Shown: positions 4,462 through 55,817 of the stretch, one piece after another
Numbering within the stretch: position 1 is the stretch's first letter
Layout: every line of letters starts with the position of its first letter
Assembly: GCF_031769215.1 (NCBI RefSeq)
Contig: NW_026782299.1
Span: 1,674,001-1,738,000, forward strand
DNA from: Ylistrum balloti
Taxonomy: Eukaryota
Direction of reading: 5' to 3'
DNA length: 64,000 nt
Made by a program: the position numbers and the translations under genes
Notes under the pieces: generated by a model
Databases searched by the model: none
What the model saw: only the letters and a program-made list of their open reading frames with translations
Told to the model about the DNA's origin: nothing

Positions 4462-28806
<24,345 letters not shown>

Positions 28807-32760: not shown

Positions 32761-35700
32761 ATGGCGACTGGAGAGACCAGCCATGTATCAGCTATAGCCA
32801 TTGAATCTGAAGAGGTAAAGTGCAGTGTGCCGGTAGTTGTGCCTGCATTAGAGTTAACAGTACAGGTGAAGCAAGGCAATGATGCAAGAAGAAAAACAAT
32901 GACAGTTGCAGGTACTGATGTAGGTGCCGATGGTGCTACAAAACAACCTGATAACAACAACTCTCAACTCAACAACAATGTTACCCAAACAGAAAGTAGT
33001 CCTACATCTACACTTCCACCAGCTGTAGTAACAGATTGTCATAATGATCAAATTTACACAGATTTTGATATTCCAAGCCTCCGATCAAATGGAAATGAGA
33101 GTTTCAATTCTAGAAATGAAAAAATCAAAGTAATCTGCAATGGTGAAGTAGATTCCATGGCTGGTGAAGCCATGGGGAACAGTATTGGAACTGGTTGTAC
33201 ATTTGGGAGTTCTGATGATATTAGAACACCCAATGGATTCATCATTGGTAATGGTGGAATGGAGGATCAGGGGTCAAAGGCCTGCCAAGCAGTTCGGCCT
33301 AAAACTATTTCTTGGAGTCGATTGGTCAAACAGAGAAAGGATAAAAAGGAGAGAAATCGAAAGCAAAACAATATTCGAGGCCAAAGTCGCGGAGAAGCAT
33401 ATTTATACCCAGAAATGTACTCTAGCTCCGAGGAAGATCTCGATGATATTGTTTCGGTGTCTGCAGAGGATTCCAAATCACAGATACAAAAGTCTTCAAG
33501 TGGTGGAGGAACTGATTGGAATTTCCATCTTATCTGTGAAACAAAACAGGAACAAACAAGACCATTGTCGTGTGGTAGTAATTCAAGATACAACTCCAAA
33601 ACTGAGTGCATAGTTAATGGAACTGTATTGAGTAATGAAAGTACAGACAGCTATGGGTCAAAGTCCTCCTCCTCAGAAAGTGGGACATGCCCTCCATTTG
33701 ATCCAGTAATGATGGTGAGAAGTGATTGTATTCTAGCACCACTTGCAGTGCCAGAGGACAGTGGAGGATCTTCTCTGTCAAGTGGGTCTGATTCTAATTT
33801 TAACCCTAATGATTTTCACTGTGATAATCTTGACTTTTCTTTAGATAATAATAATATGTATAGATATTCCCAGTCCCATGCTAGTCAAGATCAAATTGCT
33901 TCACAGGTTTTAGAAATAAACAATATTTCATGTGAAGAAAACATGCCAAAACGTGAAGCAGAAATGAGATCACCAATTATGCCGTTCTTACCAAATGCAC
34001 AAATTCAACAGCTTCCACGGCCTGCTAGTAATGACAGCTTAGATGAGATAGGTGACTACATTGACACAGATTTTCCATCTCAAGCCAGCCGCCTACTGTT
34101 TGCCTGTAGCTCTGCAAGCTCTTCCTCAACCTCATCTGATGAGGACGAGGGGTATGGGGTTAATGCAGAACCTCGGATCCCAGATTATTCAGAACGCGAG
34201 GAAGATAGAAATGAACTACCTGTTCTCCCACATGAGCCTTTGCAATTTCACGAAAGGAAATCAAATGGACACAGGGAAGATGAAAGTGAAAGTAGAGTTC
34301 TATTTTTAGATGATTCTGCAAGTGATTTGAAGCTCTGTGATAGATTGTCCAATCATGCCTGTTTAAAAGACAATGATCATGACTGTGCAATCAAACCAAC
34401 CAAACCACTGCCAAGGTTGGGCAGTTGTACAGGTAAAAGTGAAAGTGGAAGTGAGGTTGGAGGTCATATGGGTTCTGACTCATCTGTGGTGTACTCACCT
34501 GAAGCAGACTTTCTAGAATTTGTTGACTCTGATCTTCCAGGGTCTGCAGGACTTCACCAATCATTTTCCTTTGTCAGGGATGCAGAGATTCTCACCCCGT
34601 TTTTGTCTGATGAACGTTGTTATCCCAGTAATTGTGATGGCGTTCATCAGGCATCTTTGGCCAACAGCTGCGAGGACATGATGGCTGAGGGTGCTGTATC
34701 CCTCACCAACAATCTGAACTATGACCGATGTTGTACAGACTTTGAAGACTTTGACAATAACATGGAGAGGTATGATCCACACCTCCAGGTTGATAATGAA
34801 AACTTTCACGCCTATTGCAATCCAGATATATGCAAGCAAGAAAAGGTACCCGGTGCAAATTTTCAGAACTCTGCCAGTAATCGTCGTGAAAAGATATTCT
34901 ACAAAGCTGCTCTGGATAGGGAGAACAGGTTATCATCAGGGTCTTCTGATGAGGAGGAGAATGTCTCTCATAGTTTTATGAAAGATGTGACTGCAAACCT
35001 TGAGGGTGATGAGGATCGTGCACCCCAAAATAGCAACACTGAATGCATGTACATGGGGGACCTAGAGAATCTCACTCATGCACTACAAAATGCTGTCATC
35101 ATGCAACTGCCACCTAAACTTGAGGAATCTTCAGGGTATGATCAATTTTTTTATAAATGTTTTATGTTGGTTTGTCACTACACAGGTTTTGATCAATTTA
35201 TTATAAAATAAGATTATTTATAAGATATATAACCCTGTATGAAAGTCAATTTTCATAATTTACTTTTCGGAGATAAATTGATTACCGGTATTTCTTAATT
35301 TTCTTTAGTTGTAATATGTATCACTTTGAATTGCCACAGTCTGAGCTGAGACAGCATTCTATATTAGAAGTGATAGAAAGTAGGACTTTCTTTCAAATTA
35401 TGATAGACTTGGTTTAACATATGTAATATCAAGAACAGGACAACTGCTTCTCTTATTCAAAACTTTTTATCCTGGATTTGCCAATGGGCCGACACATAGT
35501 TTCTAACTCAAGGAGAGACAGGACAATTAAAATTTAGTAGTATATGTTATTAGAATGCCTTTAACTGGCTTTGAATGATGTTAGTGTTGGTATCCATAAA
35601 TAACTTTATATATAGGATTCATTCAGGAAACTAACATATTTTCTGGGTTACAAGCTACACCGATATAAAAGCCACAGAGCCAATTTTTACAGATTTTACA

Positions 35701-38700
35701 ACCAACTCCCATGGAAAAAAAGTGCAGCTTATAATCCAGAAAATACAGTGCATTTAATAACATCTATTCATGTTGTTAGTATTTCAAGCAGTTAAGGTCA
35801 TGATGATCCTTGATTTTCTTTCTAGGGGTCAAGAACTTGAGGTCATAGTTAATATTATTATATAAAAGTATTCAATTGAATTAACATTATCATTACAGCT
35901 GACAAATTTTTAAAAGATTTTGAACATACACTATCAATGTAAAATTTAAAGTTAAATACAAGAATACCTTTCAGTATGGTCATATATTGAAATTTCTAAT
36001 ATAAGATAAAAGTTTCCATTATAAATGCATGCTTCCATAAACTCAGTAGCAGAACCATGATTTTTAGATTGGGTAGCCTTTAAGCATATTACACTGATCA
36101 CAACTCAATGAAAAAATACTTAACATATATGAGAAAGAAAAATTCCTCAAAAAATGCCGGGGCCTGGATTAATCATGAAAAGGGTGGGACCTGTCATGTG
36201 CTTGTCCTCTGGGTCCTTCACTGCTATTTACGATAATGATTAATTTCATTTCCCAAGAATCTGTAGTCCTAAGCCACAACAATTGTTTTTATGGCCTTGA
36301 GAGTGAGTGCATTCATGTCTAACATATATTGTCTGAAGATATATACACATGTTGACTAATAATAAAGATCCCATCAACTGTATGTAACATATGATTCTAC
36401 ATCTAATTCAAAGTGTAACTGATTGTAGGGAGAGTTCTGATGAGCCAATCTATGAGGAAATAGAATGTCTAGAGCCACTGTTGACAGGTGATAACAGTCT
36501 ACATGTTGTCAAGGAGGAAGTCACAAAATCTACCGACAATGTGTCCCAGGTATGTCGTACTGAGTGTCTAGAGCCACTGTTCATAGGTGATGCCATTCTT
36601 TGTAGAAAGTTCATGTGCAGTTGGTATATCATTTCCAAAATTGGTAGCATCATTCTACTGACTTCATTTTTCCAGGATTTGTCAAAGAATAATTCTTTTT
36701 CAAATTCAAAATCACCATTTCGATATTGCATTCATATCAACATTTGGACTGGATAGGGAATGTATTACAAAGATAATATGTCTTATATAGGTAATGTCTT
36801 GTTTATGAGTAACATTTTTGAGTAACCCTGGTATCAGTTCTATTGTATTTATGAAATATGTTATATACTATACACTGAAGTTTTAATTGTTTTTTTATGA
36901 TTCAAACTTCTGAACTTTTTTAGGTTTTACCAAAGTATGAACAGCGACGTCGACGAGGTAACAAGCCTCACTGCCATGTGGAAAAGGTAATGATCTGGAA
37001 TGAGTATGAGGCATATGTCTTGCAAGTGAAACAGATTGGAACAACAGCTTGTGGTCCGACAGCTGTACTTAATGTAATGGTGAGTTCATGTTTATATTCA
37101 CAAGTTTTCTGTATTCATTCTGTGCACCAGTGAATACTTCTCCTGTTTGCACAATATTGACTTTTCCTAATCCTTCTATCAATATTACACGATGGATAAA
37201 AATTTTGAATTTGAAAAAAAAAATTTTGAGATTACGTTTTTTATTCGAGGATAGAATAAAATTACAAAAAATTGATTCTTTGAAAATGATCACAGGAAAG
37301 GACCCCCCATGAATTATGCAACTTTTCTAATTAAATGTTTTGATAAGTGCAAAAATTTGAACCTTGAAATAAAGTAAATGTTATTGTTATGGTTTCCCAA
37401 GGTAGCAAACTTTATTGTTCATATTGATACTTTACACGTATAAAAGTCAAGTGCTACTCAGCATATAATAATCTTATATAGTGCATGTGAAATTCCTTTC
37501 TCAGACTGACTGCCATCTTTAACTTATTAATTTTACGTTAATTTTGTTTTACTTTACAGAAAGCATTTGATTACCAAGTAGACAAGGATGAGATCTGTAA
37601 GCAAATTCTGGCCAATTTAAGGATGGAGGGGGCACCAATACCGTACTACCTCTTCTCTAGGTCTGCCGCAGGTAAATAGAAGTATAGGTGTCAAAGCAAT
37701 GAAAACACATTATAGAACCATATTGTTTATGAGTGAGGTCTGATTTATGTTTAAATGTTACTAGAAAGATTAATGGCAGACCTTTTTTAAAAGTTTATGA
37801 TACTTTTATATCTCATTATTTCAATGAGGCGATAATCTTTGTCCATATGACCGCATTTCGTGTAAGGGGAGGAAAAAGTCAGCATCATGGTTATCAATAT
37901 CACAGTTTTGGTATTAAATACAGCATTGTGGATGAATTCATTTCATTTGAATATGTTGAAGTTAGTCATGTTTGTTTTCGTATCTTATTGATAATTGAAC
38001 TTAAATACTCTAATCATATTATTTATTATATGTTTGTCAATGTAAAAAGTATTTCTTCTTTACCCAGTTGTCATTGATGTCATGATGACTTCAGAGTGAT
38101 ATCATGACATGACTCTGCTTATCTTGTCATCATGTGGTGACCAATAATTAAGGTAATACACAGATCTTATGACCTACAGATCCTGTCGTTTAATAGAGCA
38201 GAAATGAGATAAAATGTGTTATATTCCAGGCACAACAGCTGAGAATCTACTGGAGGGAGTAGAAAAGCTAACTAAGGGAGCTATACGGGGTCGCTTTTTC
38301 AATTTTTATCCGCCTCGCAAAGTGGAGCTCCTCAAATGGCTTGGTTACTGGATGAAAAAAGGTAATCTCTTTAATTTTAGGTGTTTGAGAATGTTTTGAA
38401 CCAGTCTAGAAAAAACACAGCTGCAGTCGGCAACTGTTTATACAGTGGTAGGGGATGGTATATGAAATCACATTCTTTCACTAATTTTTTTATCAGATAT
38501 TACTGATTTTATGTTGATTTGCCACTGAAGTCTGTGTAATAATCAGAAAAGAAAAGATCCATCATAGTGTTGGTAGGAGTCCCAGCTTAGAACAACTGTA
38601 ATGTCCTGACTATATCTGTTCAGTTTCACACACAATTATCTCTGTATCCTATTTAATCTGATGCTTGTCCATGAATGGTATTAGTGCCTTTCCTAAGTCA

Positions 38701-40388
38701 GCAGAAGAAAATAAACTCTAAGGTTAAAATATCGATGAAACATTGAAATATACAGACTGCCAGATAGATTATCCTTTAACATGGCACCGTGTATATACTT
38801 GAGGAGTTCAAGGGAGACAACTGTGTCATGACTACATGTACTTCATGCAAGTTCTGAAATATATATATATACATATATAATATCAGTGAAAACTAATCTG
38901 AAGTATCATATAACACTTATCTCGATATCCCAGGTGCAGTTCCAATTGCCACTCTAAACCTTCAGCGTGGAGTAAAGCCAGGATGGACAATACCAGATGC
39001 CTGGCATCACCAGATGGTGTATGGTGTAAGCTCTAAAGGTAATACTGACCAAATCAGCAAAACTTTATATCACAATTTCAGAAAAAAAAACCCTTCCTAT
39101 AATTCTCTTTTGATTTCGAAAATTGAAATTTATAAAATGTCCTAGTTTATGCATCATTGAGAGTTAGGTGACTTTGGTGCAAACGGTTGGAATGGTTGGA
39201 CCTTTTGAACCAGAAGGAGGTATAGATCAGGACAAGTCTTGCAAGTGGAACCTTCTCATGTTCAGAAAAGTAACTAGCAGAATATCATAAATTTTTCAGA
39301 ATTTTTTAATGATCTGGGAAAGATATGATATTTAGTACAGGTTAATATGGGACATATTTTGTATTTAATAGGAAATTCAGAAACTGTGCATTTTGAGCTT
39401 TAGATATAACAATTTCAACATCAGTGCAGGTGTGATTGTTTACTAACATGCAACCTGGATTGACTCTCTGGTTCAAGCAAAAGCACCCTCATCGTAAACA
39501 GGTGGGTTTAAGTAATGTGTTGCTTATTCTGGGCCTCTTACGTTTACAGGAGTGTATCTGACAAATCCTCTGGAGATTGTACCCGCAGAGACAGTTATGG
39601 AGCAGTTGACTAGTGACTCAGTTCTGTTGGTGAGACGACAAGATGTTGTTAATCGGTTCAGGGACTGGGCTCCACTTAATGATTTTCTCAAACAGAGAGA
39701 TACACGCTGGCAAACATGGAATGTGCTTGGTAAGTTTAATTCTTTCTTGATCTGGAATCAGTCAAATTAGATTTGTGTGGTAACATAGAAATAAAGTGTA
39801 AAAACATGTTAGCTAGATTGAGGTGTTTTTGAGGAAACAAGAAGTCTAGAATGAAGACACAATCAGATTTTAACTCAATTTAGATATTTCTGGCAAATTT
39901 CATCATCCATATGAAATAATAACAAAACGTCAAACAAAATTTTAAATACTGAAGTGAAATGAGGATGGGATTGTAGCTTTCAATATTTCAGAGAAACAGA
40001 GAACAAAAAATCAAGAGACGAAAATAAAGATTTCAGGGACTTTTAACAGTTTAAATATTTCTGACTAGCTTCATTATCCATACAAGATGAAAAAAAATTC
40101 TTGACTTTGTTTTCAGGTCAAGTAGTGAATGTTCTGCGTGAAGCTTGTACTGCGCTGTCACACCAGATACCTCGACACCGTGCCCAGCTCACCTCACACA
40201 TCACCATCCCTGCGGCATACAAGGCTGGCATAACGCTATTTGTACGTCAAAATACAGAGGTGACAGAGGAACTTCTCAGTGCACAGGAACTAGAATTGAG
40301 AGACGGTTCAGAGTTAGAGACTGAAAATTTGAATGGAACAAGTAAATGTGGTGTTCAGTTCGACTTGGACAGTTCAAGTTTAACCTAG
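32761..40388 (+). CDS. Uncharacterised ~1150-aa protein: long acidic disordered N-terminus plus C-terminal peptidase C39/papain-like domain
   Basis: Exons 32761-35135, 36429-36549, 36924-37079, 37560-37671, 38230-38361, 38934-39038, 39550-39729, 40117-40388; all GT-AG, phases consistent, 3453 nt ending in TAG. Domain motifs: QIGTTACGPTAVLNVM, GTTAENL, PIATLNL, WHHQMVYGV, VYLTNP. The gene structure is strong; the domain call is motif-based. Confidence 0.88.
35633..35749. mobile_element. Tiny MITE-like remnant (Tc1/mariner/pogo-type ends)
   Basis: Imperfect ~27-bp inverted ends TATTTTCTGGGTTACAAGCTACAC / GTGCAGCTTATAATCCAGAAAATA. Confidence 0.4.
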
Positions 40389-41587
40389 TACCTACATCTA
40401 TGTGTAGTGTCCATTTGAAGATATTTCTTTTTAAGATTTGCTATTAAAACTTTGCTTCTTATATTTATAGTACTAAATTTTGAATAACACAGTTGAACCA
40501 GATAGTTTGGATACAAACATGACAGTGCTATTTAAAAAAAGAAACAATCTTTTACCATGAACTCGCTTCTTTTTCTAAATGCAGAATATTTCTTCTGTGT
40601 TTTTAAAGTGGAATATTACTACCAGGATATTTTTTATGAAATTGTACTGTTGTTAGGGATATATTGGCTATGAGTGTGTTTGTATACAACATTGCTTAAT
40701 GTGGGTTTAAGGAAAAGATGAACCCTTAGTAAATGCGTCAATAGAGTTTTGTGTAGATGTGTGTGAAGAGAAGGGAGTGAGGGTGACGCTTTCACCTCAA
40801 ACATATGCCCACTTGATTACCCAGTGTGTATGAGGATGATCTCTTTGCAGGTATATATGCCCACTGGATTGACCATTATGAGTGAGGGTGTTCTCACCTC
40901 GGGTATATGGCCAGTGGATTGCCCTGCATAAGTGAGAATGTTCTCACCTGGGTTATTTGTCGAGTTGATTGCTCTGTGTGTGTGGCTATGTTCTCACCCC
41001 AGCTGTGTGTGTGGTATATGTTCAAAAGAGCATCAAGGGGAAATCTTACAAGTATGTGTTCAGCTGTCATAGTGTGTGAAATCAGATCTGGCATTTGTTA
41101 GATAGTTACAGATAATGTACCTAAAATCATTGAATTTGTACATCTGAAAATTGTTTTTGATAAGAAACGGTACAAACAATTTGTTATAGATTTAGCATTG
41201 ATATATTTCCACAATATAGGTAAGTGATTGTATTCATACCTGTTCTCATAGTGAACAATGAATGGTGTTATTGGTGTTAACTTCTTAAGGTAAGTATATT
41301 ATGGCTGTTAAATATATAAATATAACCCAAAAGTCCTTTTTGGCTGATCTATGTGTTACAATACAAATATGTACAGAAAACATTAGTGCTTATACTGTGC
41401 AGAAATATTGTTCAAAAATATTTTTGTTATTAAGTTTCTTAAAAGTTGGTATTGTACAGTAAAAACATTATTGTGATGAAATGTTGACCAGCCTCAGAGT
41501 CATTCTCATGTTAGTAATTGTTTGTATTTCAAATAGGAATGGTCATTATAGATAAGGTGTTTTAAATGTGTATTGATATTTTCATAT

Positions 41588-46906: not shown

Positions 46907-49900
46907 TCATGGGTATTGGTAGATATGACGTGATTGATGACGTAAAGAGTGGAATCCGCCAATGTATATGTTATAATGAATTATGTAGCGGTTGTAATCA
47001 CGAGCGGCTATATTTACGGTGTCCAGTGACTGATTACTCGTAAATAATGAATCCTCGGCTTTATGTTCAGCATCGAATATGTGCGAGTTGTTCTGTATAC
47101 CGGAAGTGTCAGTATTTTTGTCTAATGGCAGATTTTCTGTTTTTGGCGGCGTATGATTTTCTTTTGGTGCACCTTTTACTTGTTCTGATCTAGATAATGC
47201 CAGGGCATCTGTTATAGTGATAGAAACACAGAGAGATTTTGAGTTACATCTCAAATACGGAGAGTCACAACTCGATTGCGTGGTAGTTGCGCTGCACGTA
47301 GGTCGCGGTTGATATTGCACCCTGTGATTCCATACATCACTGAGGCCATCTAAAACAACGAGACTGCCAAGACCCATCGGAGCTAGTGGGGCATGACCAG
47401 CTCTTCCGTAAAATTGAGGATAATCCCTCTGAGGGTCGACGTCTTCTCTCCTTTGATGGGACCGGAAGTCCTCCCATATCTTGTCTACGAACGAATGGAG
47501 AAGGTAAAAAATAGGATCGAATGCGCCTATCTCAATTTTCCTCATTTGACCTCCAACCCAAACATGAACTCTATTGTGTAGCGCTTCTATATTACTCTCT
47601 TGGCTAGCAGAAAAATAACTGATATCTCCCAATCGTCTCTGAGATAGTATCTGTATTATATCGGCATCAGAAATTAGGCGCCCTTGCGCCGAGATAAGGC
47701 GCTGTAGATGGCCGAATCCAAACTGAGTTTCCCAATGCTTGAAAGGACCTTCGATCACTTGACCGTGACCTGAACCCAGAAAATCATCTGACCAGATGAT
47801 CGACTGATAAGGTTTTTCCATTCGTCCGTCGAGAGTGACGTCCCAGTACGGAATTGTTACGTTAGGACACGCCTGCCGCAGAGCGTTCTCCATCCTACAA
47901 CGAATTCATATACTTTACTTCGTTTTGCATTGAATTTTTTAAACTGACTTTGTGGGGTATGTTTAGGAACAGTCGTTATTATTATGTAACTAAAATGAAG
48001 ACAGATATATCCTTTTTAGCCCTCCCTCAAAACTTTACAAAAAAAGATTCGATGAGTTCATAAAACCACAACTCTGACACGAGAATGATATCCGACTTAT
48101 CTGGTTGAAAACAGTCTAGATGGTAACGGTCGACATTTTTGAGTCTCGATATTTCTTGGCTTGAACGTGAAGCACAACTGAACCCATGCAGGAAGCTACT
48201 TGCCATTAATTTCTTTCTAAGTAAACAGGATGAAATCAATTTTAAAATCGGTTTTATAGTTATGATTTCTTAAATACCTCTGATTCTAGAGTTTCACATG
48301 AAGGGAAGACAAAGTAGATGACAAATGCGTAAAAGCATTTCATTAATTTAAGCGCTGCTAGCGAGTCTAACTCATAACGAACCTGACATTTAACAGTTAA
48401 CTCGCCAAATTATCAAAATCCGAGTCTTTACGGGATTTACCGGACAGAGATGTTGCGAAAAAGTCGTGCATACTTACATCAGCAGGAAGACTCTGTGCCA
48501 TCCGAGGAATCCCGGACCTGCGTGCGCAGCTTTATTAGCAGACGCACGAGAATGGATGTTGGCCAGTAGGTCATACTTGTTGAGGCTTACTGACTATAAT
48601 ACAGATAACTCAATGTTAGTACGGCTTAAAAATAAACAAAATATCCTTTCCCCATGTGACTTCCCGGGAATTACCTGCAGACTGAGAAAAACGTTTTATA
48701 AACAAAATGAAGGATAACACAGAGGTTGAGGAATCCAACGTCCTGTTGGTGGCGCTGGTTGGTTGGTGTACATGTCAACCAATAAAATCGTTGATGTTCC
48801 ATCCTTTATCTATTTATTTTATAAACGATGACATATCTCATGTTATTAATGGTTTGTCTGTCTATTAGAATCTTCACCGAAAAATTAATAATTTTGGAAA
48901 TCTTGCTTCTATGACTACTAGCACTAATATTATTCCCTGACTCCCCCTACCCTGGCCGGGACAATCTATCGTTATTGTATTGTCAGGGGTATACATCAGC
49001 ACTGCACTACCCACCATCGTAAAATTGTAGAATCAAATTACAAAGTAGCCCTTTTAAATTCACCTTTTCATTCTTTGTGTTTCAAACACTCACCGTATCG
49101 TTTTTGAGAATATTGAGTGCCAAATGAAATTTCAGCCTTTCTCCTTCAGTCATTGCACGGTATTCCTTTCGAATCCGTACCTCGTGTTGTTCCGGGAGGT
49201 GTAGTAAAGACCCTAACCAGACAACATCCTGTTTGGTCAGGGGAAACTCGAAGGCATCCATATCAATTTTTTCTTCGTCGGGATTATTGCCGTCTCCGGG
49301 AATCACTATTCGGTCATCTGTTTGTATGACCTCGACTCCTATGGTCCCATTCGTAAAAACGACAGGTCGTATGTATGCAGCGGAGACAGCTGATAGGGAC
49401 AACGTCACAGTCCACAAAAGGATGTTGTATATAGATCGAGGCTAAGGAAGTAAAATAACGTACATCAAATATCGAAATCAGAAAGCATAGTGTGAGGATT
49501 GTTCCTGAGGTGAGGTAGGATTGGGGATTTTTTATTATAAAGATCGCCGTTAACTGTTTGCATGTTATTCTCGGTAACCAAGCGGTCTAGGGTCGAGATA
49601 TCGGGAAAGAAGCCAGCTGGGGTTAAATACTGAAAGTTGTTTCAGTCGAATGACCTAGTTCAATTCAAGTGTCAAATGTGGGGAAAAAAATTTGAAAAAG
49701 CATGCTGCATGTCTTTATTGCGGATGGCTTTTGTCTTTACTGTATTCAAAGGATCATTTTTCAGAATGTAATATTTGTGATTTAAAATCTTCATTCAGAC
49801 GTGGAATTCTTTCATTATAGTGAATAAAATGAGTGACATTTCTGTTGTAAAGAACGACAACTGACGGCAATATATACTCAGGATTATATCACTGTGTTAG

Positions 49901-54500: not shown

Positions 54501-55817
54501 ACCATTGGTACGATCTTCTGTGACAACCATTGGTACGATCTACTGTTACTACCATTGGTACGATCTTCTGTGACTACCATTGGTACGATGTACTGTTACT
54601 ACCATTGGTACGATCTTCTGTGACTACCATTGGTACGATCTACTGTGACTACCAATGGTACAATCTACTTTGACTACCTTTGGTGCGATCTTCTGTGACT
54701 ACCAGTGGTACAATCTACTGTGACTACCATTGGTACGATCTACTGTGACTACCATTGGTACGATCTACTGTGACTACCATTGGTACGATCTACTGTTACT
54801 ACCATTGGTACGATCTTCTGTGACAACCATTGGTACGATCTACTGTTACTACCATTGGTACGATCTATTGTGACTACCATTGGTACAATCTACTGTGACT
54901 ACCTTTGGTACGATGTACTGTGACTACCATTGGTACGATCTACTGTGACTACCATTGATCCAATCTACTGTGACTACCATTGGTACGATCTACTGTGACT
55001 ACCATTGGTACGATCTACTGTGACTACCATTGGTACGATCTACTGTGACTACCATTGATCCAATCTACTGTGACTACCATTTGTACGATTTTAAACGAAA
55101 ATTATATGACTAAATATTTCTAGTTCACTTGATGTACTTGACAATATTTTCAAATGAACATATTTTCGGCGAGGATGACTTTTTTAGATTTAGGTTGATT
55201 TGATGACATATAATCACTACGGTTTTCAATCGCTAAGAGGCAGTTGAAGTGGCCGGTAGTGTCTTACCGACTCAAGATTAACTCCATATTAGTCAATTAG
55301 CTTCATACGTTATATTTTCAGGTGTGCTGAAGCTCACAGAGTAAGTGCCAAAACCATATCGCTTATTGACGACATCAAACAGAAGGTTGGGTACGATAAG
55401 CGCATTTTCCCAACTATGTATATGAGGAAGTCCTTTCCAACGGAACAGCCATTGTCTTTGTGTTTTAGTCTCCGCGAGGACAACATTTCACATGCATCAG
55501 TTAAAAGGTGGGTCGAGAGAGAAACCGGACTCAAAGTAGCTTCAATCCAATATGATCCAGTGTCAATCAGGGCTGGGGTGATGGTCGGTACTGGAAGTCG
55601 CTGGATCGTCACCATGACATCACTAGAAGACTGTCGGAAATTGCTACAGCAAGGACTCGAAGAAAATGGGGAGAAAGTGATGGTCCGATGGCTTGACGAT
55701 ATTTGTGTGTGCGAGTTCGACGCTTACAAAATACACTGCCAGGAACAAAATCGAACAAAATTAAGAAAGATACAGAGAAACCATAAATCTGATGGAAGTT
55801 TAATAAAACAACTTTGA
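51571..55817 (+). CDS. Uncharacterised ~417-aa protein with C-terminal RRM-like (LINE ORF1/ZCCHC3-like) domain
   Basis: Exons 51571-51939, 53163-53500, 54192-54242, 55322-55817 join in frame (phases 0, 2, 2; 1254 nt) with donors GTAAAA, GTAAGT, GTAAAA and pyrimidine-rich acceptors. The first frame is open upstream to an acceptor at 51379, so the N-terminus may be longer. The last exon shows a beta-alpha-beta-beta-alpha-beta pattern (LSLCFSL / SHASVKRWVERETG / VASIQY / RWIVTM / LEDCRKLLQQG / KVMVR). Confidence 0.72.
52043..52113 (-). pseudogene. tRNA(Gly)-like pseudogene or tRNA-derived SINE head
   Basis: Reads GCATCGTTGGTTCAGTTGGTAGG...CACGCCGGAGAACCAGATTCGATTCCGG, with A-box- and B-box-like motifs resembling tRNA-Gly(GCC). 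The acceptor and anticodon stems are broken. Confidence 0.55.
54333..55089. repeat. 25-bp minisatellite, ~30 copies (intron of the RRM-like gene)
   Basis: Unit CTACTGTGACTACCATTGGTACGAT containing the palindrome TACCA-T-TGGTA. Confidence 0.95.

Follow-up and report, generated by a model that had tools for sequence, protein, structure and literature searches.

The region between positions 36924 and 40388 of a 64,000-nucleotide stretch of the Ylistrum balloti genome (contig NW_026782299.1, positions 1,674,001 to 1,738,000; the window) raises a simple question. Do the short open segments on its forward strand form one gene and, if so, what does the product do? A first-pass annotation, made from the DNA letters alone, had read six short exons here as an uncharacterised C39/papain-like cysteine peptidase. 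We conclude that 36924-40388 probably encodes the catalytic domain of a C39-like papain-fold peptidase, belonging to an unnamed animal family, that acts by the mechanism and on the type of substrate proposed below. The gene was already annotated, but it is uncharacterised. Its family, which lacks a name, a Pfam entry and a solved structure, is new but of a known kind; it is not a new kind of system.

Structure of the gene

Joined in order, the six exons form a 957-nt reading frame that is free of internal stops and encodes a product of 318 amino acids. All six have canonical borders, with AG ahead and GT behind, and the last closes with TAG. The motifs quoted in the first-pass annotation are all present in this product. 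An open, in-frame join of six exons that holds every one of them is far beyond chance. Most of the exons had been described as hidden from the list of open reading frames, and indeed they are too short to stand out in it.

The six exons are exons 3 to 8 of an eight-exon coding sequence (CDS; 32761-40388, 3453 nt) that specifies a protein of 1150 amino acids. The 318-residue product is only the C-terminal 28% of this protein. The phases of exon 2 fit both flanking exons (2+1 with exon 1). All 1150 of the 1150 residues are identical to NCBI XP_060075223.1, 'uncharacterized protein LOC132554909' [Ylistrum balloti] (P0119 in our protein set). Since the joined product equals this entry letter for letter, an independent annotation reached the same gene model. 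The orthologue from Mizuhopecten yessoensis (P0001, 1162 amino acids) is 84% identical to the scallop protein end to end and 94% identical inside the 318-residue part; a value of about 81% can be derived for the N-terminal part. Hence, the C-terminal part is the better conserved.

Only one public sequencing run (X1) held 35000-40500. The run is DNA; its contigs are colinear with the window through the introns and contain no splice joints. Relative to the window it has about 30 scattered single-base differences and several small insertions, including one of 16 nt behind 38159, in an intron. The exonic differences include 37070 (T>A), 39569, 39677 (T>A), 40151, 40256 and 40362. These differences show that X1 comes from another individual or haplotype. 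An apparent joint in X1, from 35749 to 39373, was rejected as a repeat artefact, having one side of only 22 letters and non-canonical ends.

A 38-nt direct repeat lies around the end of exon 2. One copy is within the exon and the other begins 13 nt into the following intron; the copies lie 99 nt from each other and are 84% alike. Each encodes ECLEPL..GD, in a shared frame that remains open as far as 36756. The repeat may be left over from a local duplication, or it may be an alternative donor.

The conserved domain and its predicted fold

The conserved unit of the protein comprises residues ~851-1122, and homologues in other phyla are 45-60% identical to the scallop domain. We counted the conservation of each residue in 124 homologous domain sequences, using scallop numbering. 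The proposed Cys-His-Asn triad was intact: Cys875 was kept in 122 of the 124 sequences, His990 in 123 and Asn1006 in all. Counts for the surrounding residues are in Table 1.

Two adjacent histidines could serve as the base. We take His990, and not His991, as the likely one. This choice was made because His990 is better conserved, because members with Phe or Tyr at position 991 retain everything else, and because the Gln-x5-Cys and His-x15-Asn spacings then equal those of papain and of C39 peptidase domains.

The loss of Cys or His from orthologues had been named as a finding that would argue against an active enzyme. Only 2 of the 124 homologues lack the Cys, and one of these also lacks the His. 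The first, P0088, has Ser in place of Cys and Asn in place of the oxyanion Gln. In the second, P0081, His replaces the Cys and Val-Asn replaces His-His, so that both histidines are gone. Judged by these substitutions, P0088 and P0081 may be inactive paralogues. Such losses would also be seen if the family were a catalytically dead scaffold that used the papain fold for binding only, and a 2023 survey reports dead papain-like proteins to be common among human proteins (PMC10318531). For the scallop family we consider a pseudo-peptidase of this sort very improbable. The scallop protein and 98% of the homologues retain Cys, His and Asn, and 96% (119/124) have the Gln. Gly, Trp and Pro beside these residues are retained too. 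Because such conservation spans sponge to fish, it argues for an active site rather than a dead scaffold.

AlphaFold2 was run on an alignment of 46 sequences (A1), with scallop residues 847-1124 as the first row (278 residues). The model had a pLDDT of 94 and a pTM of 0.91. It shows an alpha+beta fold in which a central helix packs on an antiparallel sheet. Cys875 (model residue 29) begins helix 29-40, with Gln869 at position -6. His990 (model residue 144) is at the start of strand 143-152 and Asn1006 (residue 160) follows the next hairpin. This is the arrangement found in peptidases of clan CA.

The predicted C39/papain-like fold was borne out when the model was compared with the PDB using Foldseek. 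The top match was the double-glycine peptidase LahT (6mpz; E 3e-4, target TM 0.67). The next matches were a Bacillus anthracis 'C39-like peptidase' (3erv), ComA, PCAT1, Alr0975, papain-like CDI toxins and staphopain. Superposition on these structures covered some 130-165 of the 278 residues, and the matches reached model residue ~260. The remainder is mainly a helical insertion of ~75 residues (model residues ~165-240), after which the last two strands (242-258) rejoin the core sheet. The low-rmsd superposition on active C39 domains suggests that the side chains of Cys, His and Asn would meet in space. In a shape search of the ESM Atlas, unnamed chordate and arthropod clusters matched at TM 0.91-0.94. 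Among the matches listed, the closest named clusters scored ~0.5-0.58 and were C39_2, DUF6885, C39 and phytochelatin synthase. Sequence searches of the PDB with exon 3, the orthologue's domain or the family profile gave chance-level matches or none.

Distribution of the family and its relation to named families

At E<=1e-3, the 59 amino acids of exon 7, used as the only query, matched 118 of 1.84 billion representative proteins. In word searches, the orthologue's domain found 215 proteins, alignment A1 found 188 and a lungfish protein found 366. Homologues occur in molluscs, annelids, arthropods, hemichordates, echinoderms, coral, sponge and fishes. They are of two forms. Long forms, of 570-1600 amino acids with the domain at the C-terminus, are present in bivalves, gastropods, cephalopods, a chiton, nemerteans, annelids and a brachiopod. 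They also occur in many crustaceans, in hemichordates and in insects (Orthoptera, Blattodea, Thysanoptera, Hymenoptera and Coleoptera). Short forms, of ~250-310 amino acids and approximately the domain alone, are found in sea urchins, starfish, a sea cucumber, the coral Stylophora and the sponge Ephydatia. The fishes also have short forms; these include sharks, rays, bichir, sturgeon, gar, bowfin, many teleosts, coelacanth and lungfish. The zebrafish member is LOC100332351. The domain is the functional unit, since it stands alone in other phyla.

Among the best 120 of the 366 matches to the lungfish query, every match with a species name was from a fish (56-77% identical) and none was from a tetrapod. 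A ferret label on one cluster, beside Oreochromis niloticus, was taken for contamination. Within these best 120 matches, the distribution suggests that the family was lost in tetrapods. No prokaryotic relative was found in 185,579 bacterial and archaeal species, each represented by one genome. JGI contigs with unnamed homologues are short and carry one uninterrupted gene apiece.

The N-terminal region is differently distributed. In residues 1-846, S (13%), E (8.6%), D (8.2%) and N (7.6%) are abundant, and the net charge is -66. The region holds three short basic clusters, one of which is RRRR at residue 840, just ahead of the domain. Alignments of this region extend only to pteriomorph bivalves (mussel and oyster; ~37%), with two short islands in other bivalves. 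We found no significant Pfam domain in the N-terminal 850 residues, nor any motif conserved beyond bivalves. A long N-terminal region is present in protostomes and hemichordates and absent in fishes, echinoderms, coral and sponge. From its composition the acidic region is probably disordered, and it looks like a fast-evolving appendage. The first-pass annotation had called the protein cytosolic for want of a signal peptide. No signal peptide or membrane segment is present in the scallop protein, in which the best 19-residue hydropathy is 1.17. An intracellular location is consistent with this.

The homologues were described as a possibly unstudied animal family, and this description stands. 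They range from sponges to fishes, no Pfam family matches at threshold and nearly all of the source names are 'uncharacterized' or 'hypothetical'. The names GyrB_0, ATRX, vitellogenin, pyroglutamyl-peptidase and calcium channel, carried by some homologues, look like unreliable automatic transfers. We found no mention in the literature of six LOC identifiers of family members.

Pfam was searched at several levels. The six exons gave nothing when used singly, being too short. Nine full-length homologues had no match at E<=0.01. Eight further long and short homologues, at E<=0.05, gave nothing but a chance-level AAA_28 match in the coelacanth protein. When 46 domains were scanned at E<=5, the only families found were Peptidase_C39_2 (9/46, best E 1.8e-4) and Phytochelatin (3/46), both below threshold. 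In the scallop protein, PF13529 (C39_2) matched over the Gln/Cys motif with 18.5 bits, short of the cut-off of 24; PF03412 was absent. Hence, neither Pfam nor the PDB sequence searches gave a clear match to a characterised protein. Language-model neighbours were ACTMAP-like_C (0.94, with 171-180 of 256 features shared), BIVM (0.93), DUF6885 (0.93), phytochelatin synthase (0.93) and C39 (0.91). The Atlas clusters to which the family itself belongs (0.96-0.97) have no Pfam 38.1 family assigned. Taken together, these results place the scallop domain within the papain superfamily, in its C39-like neighbourhood, and outside every named family tested by profile.

The family differs from its relatives in several respects. 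The C39 and C39_2 peptidases (LahT, 6mpz; PCAT1, 4ry2/8vp3; ComA, 5xe8; PF03412 and PF13529) are the nearest, and the scallop protein falls below their gathering score. Unlike them, the scallop family is eukaryotic and presumably intracellular, has Asn instead of Asp and is about twice as large, with the ~75-residue helical insertion and extra N-terminal helices. The scallop protein also lacks an ABC transporter fusion, has a disordered N-terminus and is encoded by an intron-bearing gene. Identity to phytochelatin synthase-like enzymes (Alr0975, 2bu3/2btw; PF05023, MEROPS C83) is 9-10%, with no Pfam membership. Identity is 12-13% to the pseudomurein endoisopeptidase PeiR (8z4h/8z4n) and to PDB 22oc ('P210 CD lyase'). 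PeiR and 22oc are archaeal or viral cell-wall enzymes, unlike the scallop family. We found no mention of 22oc or 'CD lyase' in the literature. UFSP1/2, ZUFSP/ZUP1 and ATG4 have the papain fold in common with the scallop domain, as well as an aromatic-type residue beside the catalytic His. They are not its closest structural or profile match.

The main rival reading concerns chemistry. Phytochelatin synthase, BtrH, CtaG and CcbD resolve the thioester of a Cys-His-Asn site with an amine acceptor. A scallop enzyme of this acyl- or peptidyl-transferase type would make or modify a small metabolite, either a peptide or an amide. We regard this as unlikely. Hydrolases, namely C39 peptidases and PeiR, score equally well or better as structural matches. 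Biosynthetic enzymes of this type are usually bacterial or archaeal, and no relative was found in the 185,579 species of these groups. A long disordered N-terminal region, as the protostome forms have, points to regulation directed at proteins.

A hidden relationship to ACTMAP, BIVM or GUCD1 is a little less likely again. ACTMAP trims the acetylated N-termini of actin. If the scallop protein were a highly diverged orthologue or paralogue of one of these, it would have the same function, for example the trimming of acetylated N-termini. ACTMAP (C19orf54; PF21646), BIVM (PF28452) and GUCD1 (PF09778) resemble the scallop family in clan-level layout, with Q-x5-C...H...[DN]-P common to all. They are likewise intracellular, stand-alone domains of similar size, and ACTMAP-like_C and BIVM are the closest named language-model clusters. 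The profiles argue otherwise. PF21646 and PF09778 matched none of the 46 domains even at E<=5, nor any of the 17 full-length or short homologues. Peptidase_C78 (UFSP) was also without a match among the 46 domains at E<=5. The first-pass annotation had set the protein apart from ACTMAP, GUCD1, UFSP and BIVM, and these searches agree for the first three. For BIVM, no match turned up in the Pfam scans, whose profile set may not include PF28452. ACTMAP-like and BIVM clusters were not among the rows listed from the 40 nearest Atlas models by shape, and the scallop family's own clusters lack a Pfam family. The scallop family has the helical insertion and different invariant motifs (WHHQM and NVLGQV). 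Tetrapods have ACTMAP, BIVM and GUCD1, and the scallop family seems absent there. We found no literature joining ACTMAP with GUCD1, or ACTMAP with C39.

Proposed reaction and significance

We return to the reading that we prefer, a peptidase. In the proposed mechanism, Cys875, at the N-terminus of the central helix, would be the nucleophile, and His990, at the start of a beta-strand, would be the general base. Asn1006, in the invariant Asn-Pro 16 residues after His990, would orient the His. Gln869, six residues ahead of Cys875, would form the oxyanion hole. Cleavage of the bond, whether peptide, isopeptide or another amide, would proceed via a thioester intermediate.

His990 is flanked by the invariant Trp989 and by His, Phe or Tyr at 991. 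The aromatic gatekeeper of ubiquitin-type proteases adjoins the catalytic His, as in C39 enzymes. The aromatic 'gatekeeper' motif is present in most ubiquitin-type proteases (bioRxiv 10.64898/2025.12.04.692294). Since double-glycine peptidases and most ubiquitin-type proteases have His flanked in this way, a substrate with small (Gly-Gly-like) residues before the scissile bond is favoured. By analogy with the nearest structural relatives, and with these flanking residues in mind, cleavage after small residues may be expected. One such substrate could be a ubiquitin-like (UBL) modifier; another could be an N-terminal or leader peptide from a protein of the cytoplasm or nucleus. As for the long acidic N-terminal region, it could be a lineage-specific appendage for targeting or regulation.

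For deubiquitinase or UBL protease function there are only hints. These are the residues beside the His and one 'Ubiquitinyl hydrolase 1' label. The labelled protein is P0217 of Batillaria attramentaria (UniRef A0ABD0LYH2); it has no detectable Pfam domain and the name is not traceable to a domain.

The positions of all features are given in Table 1. Three further open frames of the window gave Pfam matches. The upstream neighbour, on the opposite strand, matches the N-terminal domain of membrane-bound site-1 protease (PF23001 MBTP1_N, E 2.2e-24). A frame downstream, also on the opposite strand, matches the tyrosinase central domain (PF00264, E 4.8e-23) and probably belongs as an exon to a neighbouring tyrosinase gene. 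The third falls just short of the DUF4732 threshold, with 26.7 bits where 27 are required. Runs of N occupy 19139-19309 and 19444-19599 of the window.

Table 1. Features of the LOC132554909 gene and of its surroundings. Positions are those of the window; the last column gives the number of the 124 homologous domains in which a residue is kept.
Feature	Position	Strand	Residues and content	Kept
CDS exon 1	32761..35135	+	1-792; ATG start in 816-aa open frame; GT donor at 35136	
CDS exon 2	36429..36549	+	792-832; linker; 121 nt; AG acceptor 36427-36428, GT donor 36550	
CDS exon 3	36924..37079	+	833-884; RRRR basic cluster, start of conserved domain (~851), Gln869, Cys875, Asn882	
CDS exon 4	37560..37671	+	885-922; helices, invariant Tyr914, SRS-x-AG motif	
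CDS exon 5	38230..38361	+	922-966; GTT-x3-L helix, invariant FF pair, Trp	
CDS exon 6	38934..39038	+	966-1001; AVPIATLNLQ strand, D987-A-W989-H990-H991-Q	
CDS exon 7	39550..39729	+	1001-1061; Asn1006-Pro1007, start of family-specific helical insertion	
CDS exon 8	40117..40388	+	1061-1150 and TAG; NVLGQV helix; core strands HIxIPAxY and GITLF; short helix, then variable acidic tail from ~1123	
Gln869 codon	37032-37034	+	exon 3; putative oxyanion residue	119
Cys875 codon	37050-37052	+	exon 3; presumed nucleophile	122
Gly876				122
Asn882			exon 3	121
Asp987			exon 6	124
Trp989			exon 6	124
His990 codon	39005-39007	+	exon 6; presumed general base	123
His991			exon 6; otherwise Phe, Tyr or Asn	121
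Gln992				123
Asn1006-Pro1007 codons	39564-39569	+	exon 7	124 each
Direct repeat, first copy	36463-36500		CDS exon 2	
Direct repeat, second copy	36562-36599		intron	
MBTP1_N open frame	27880-28353	-	157 aa	
Tyrosinase open frame	46907-47893	-	328 aa	
DUF4732 open frame	55416-55817	+	133 aa	

For a 2023 survey of papain-like families, the starting material was Pfam families and human proteins (PMC10318531); a term search of this survey gave nothing matching the scallop family. Because it has no apparent human or mouse orthologue, the family lies outside the curated mammalian degradome and deubiquitinase lists. Loss in tetrapods, if true, would explain how it escaped human- and mouse-centred catalogues of proteases and deubiquitinases. 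We tentatively suggest a wider view, of which we are much less sure. The family might be an unrecognised class of animal UBL or N-terminal-processing proteases that extends from sponge to fish, is strongly constrained and was lost in tetrapods, with an acidic targeting region, long and fast-evolving, added in protostomes and hemichordates.

The 270-residue domain stays 45-60% identical among molluscs, arthropods, hemichordates, echinoderms and fishes, which argues for a specific and important role. The zebrafish gene makes the family directly testable. Eukaryotic C39-like enzymes are few, and the function of one of them, ACTMAP, was assigned only in 2022; knowing the substrate of the scallop family would give this group a new branch. 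That substrate might reveal a pathway that tetrapods lost or replaced.

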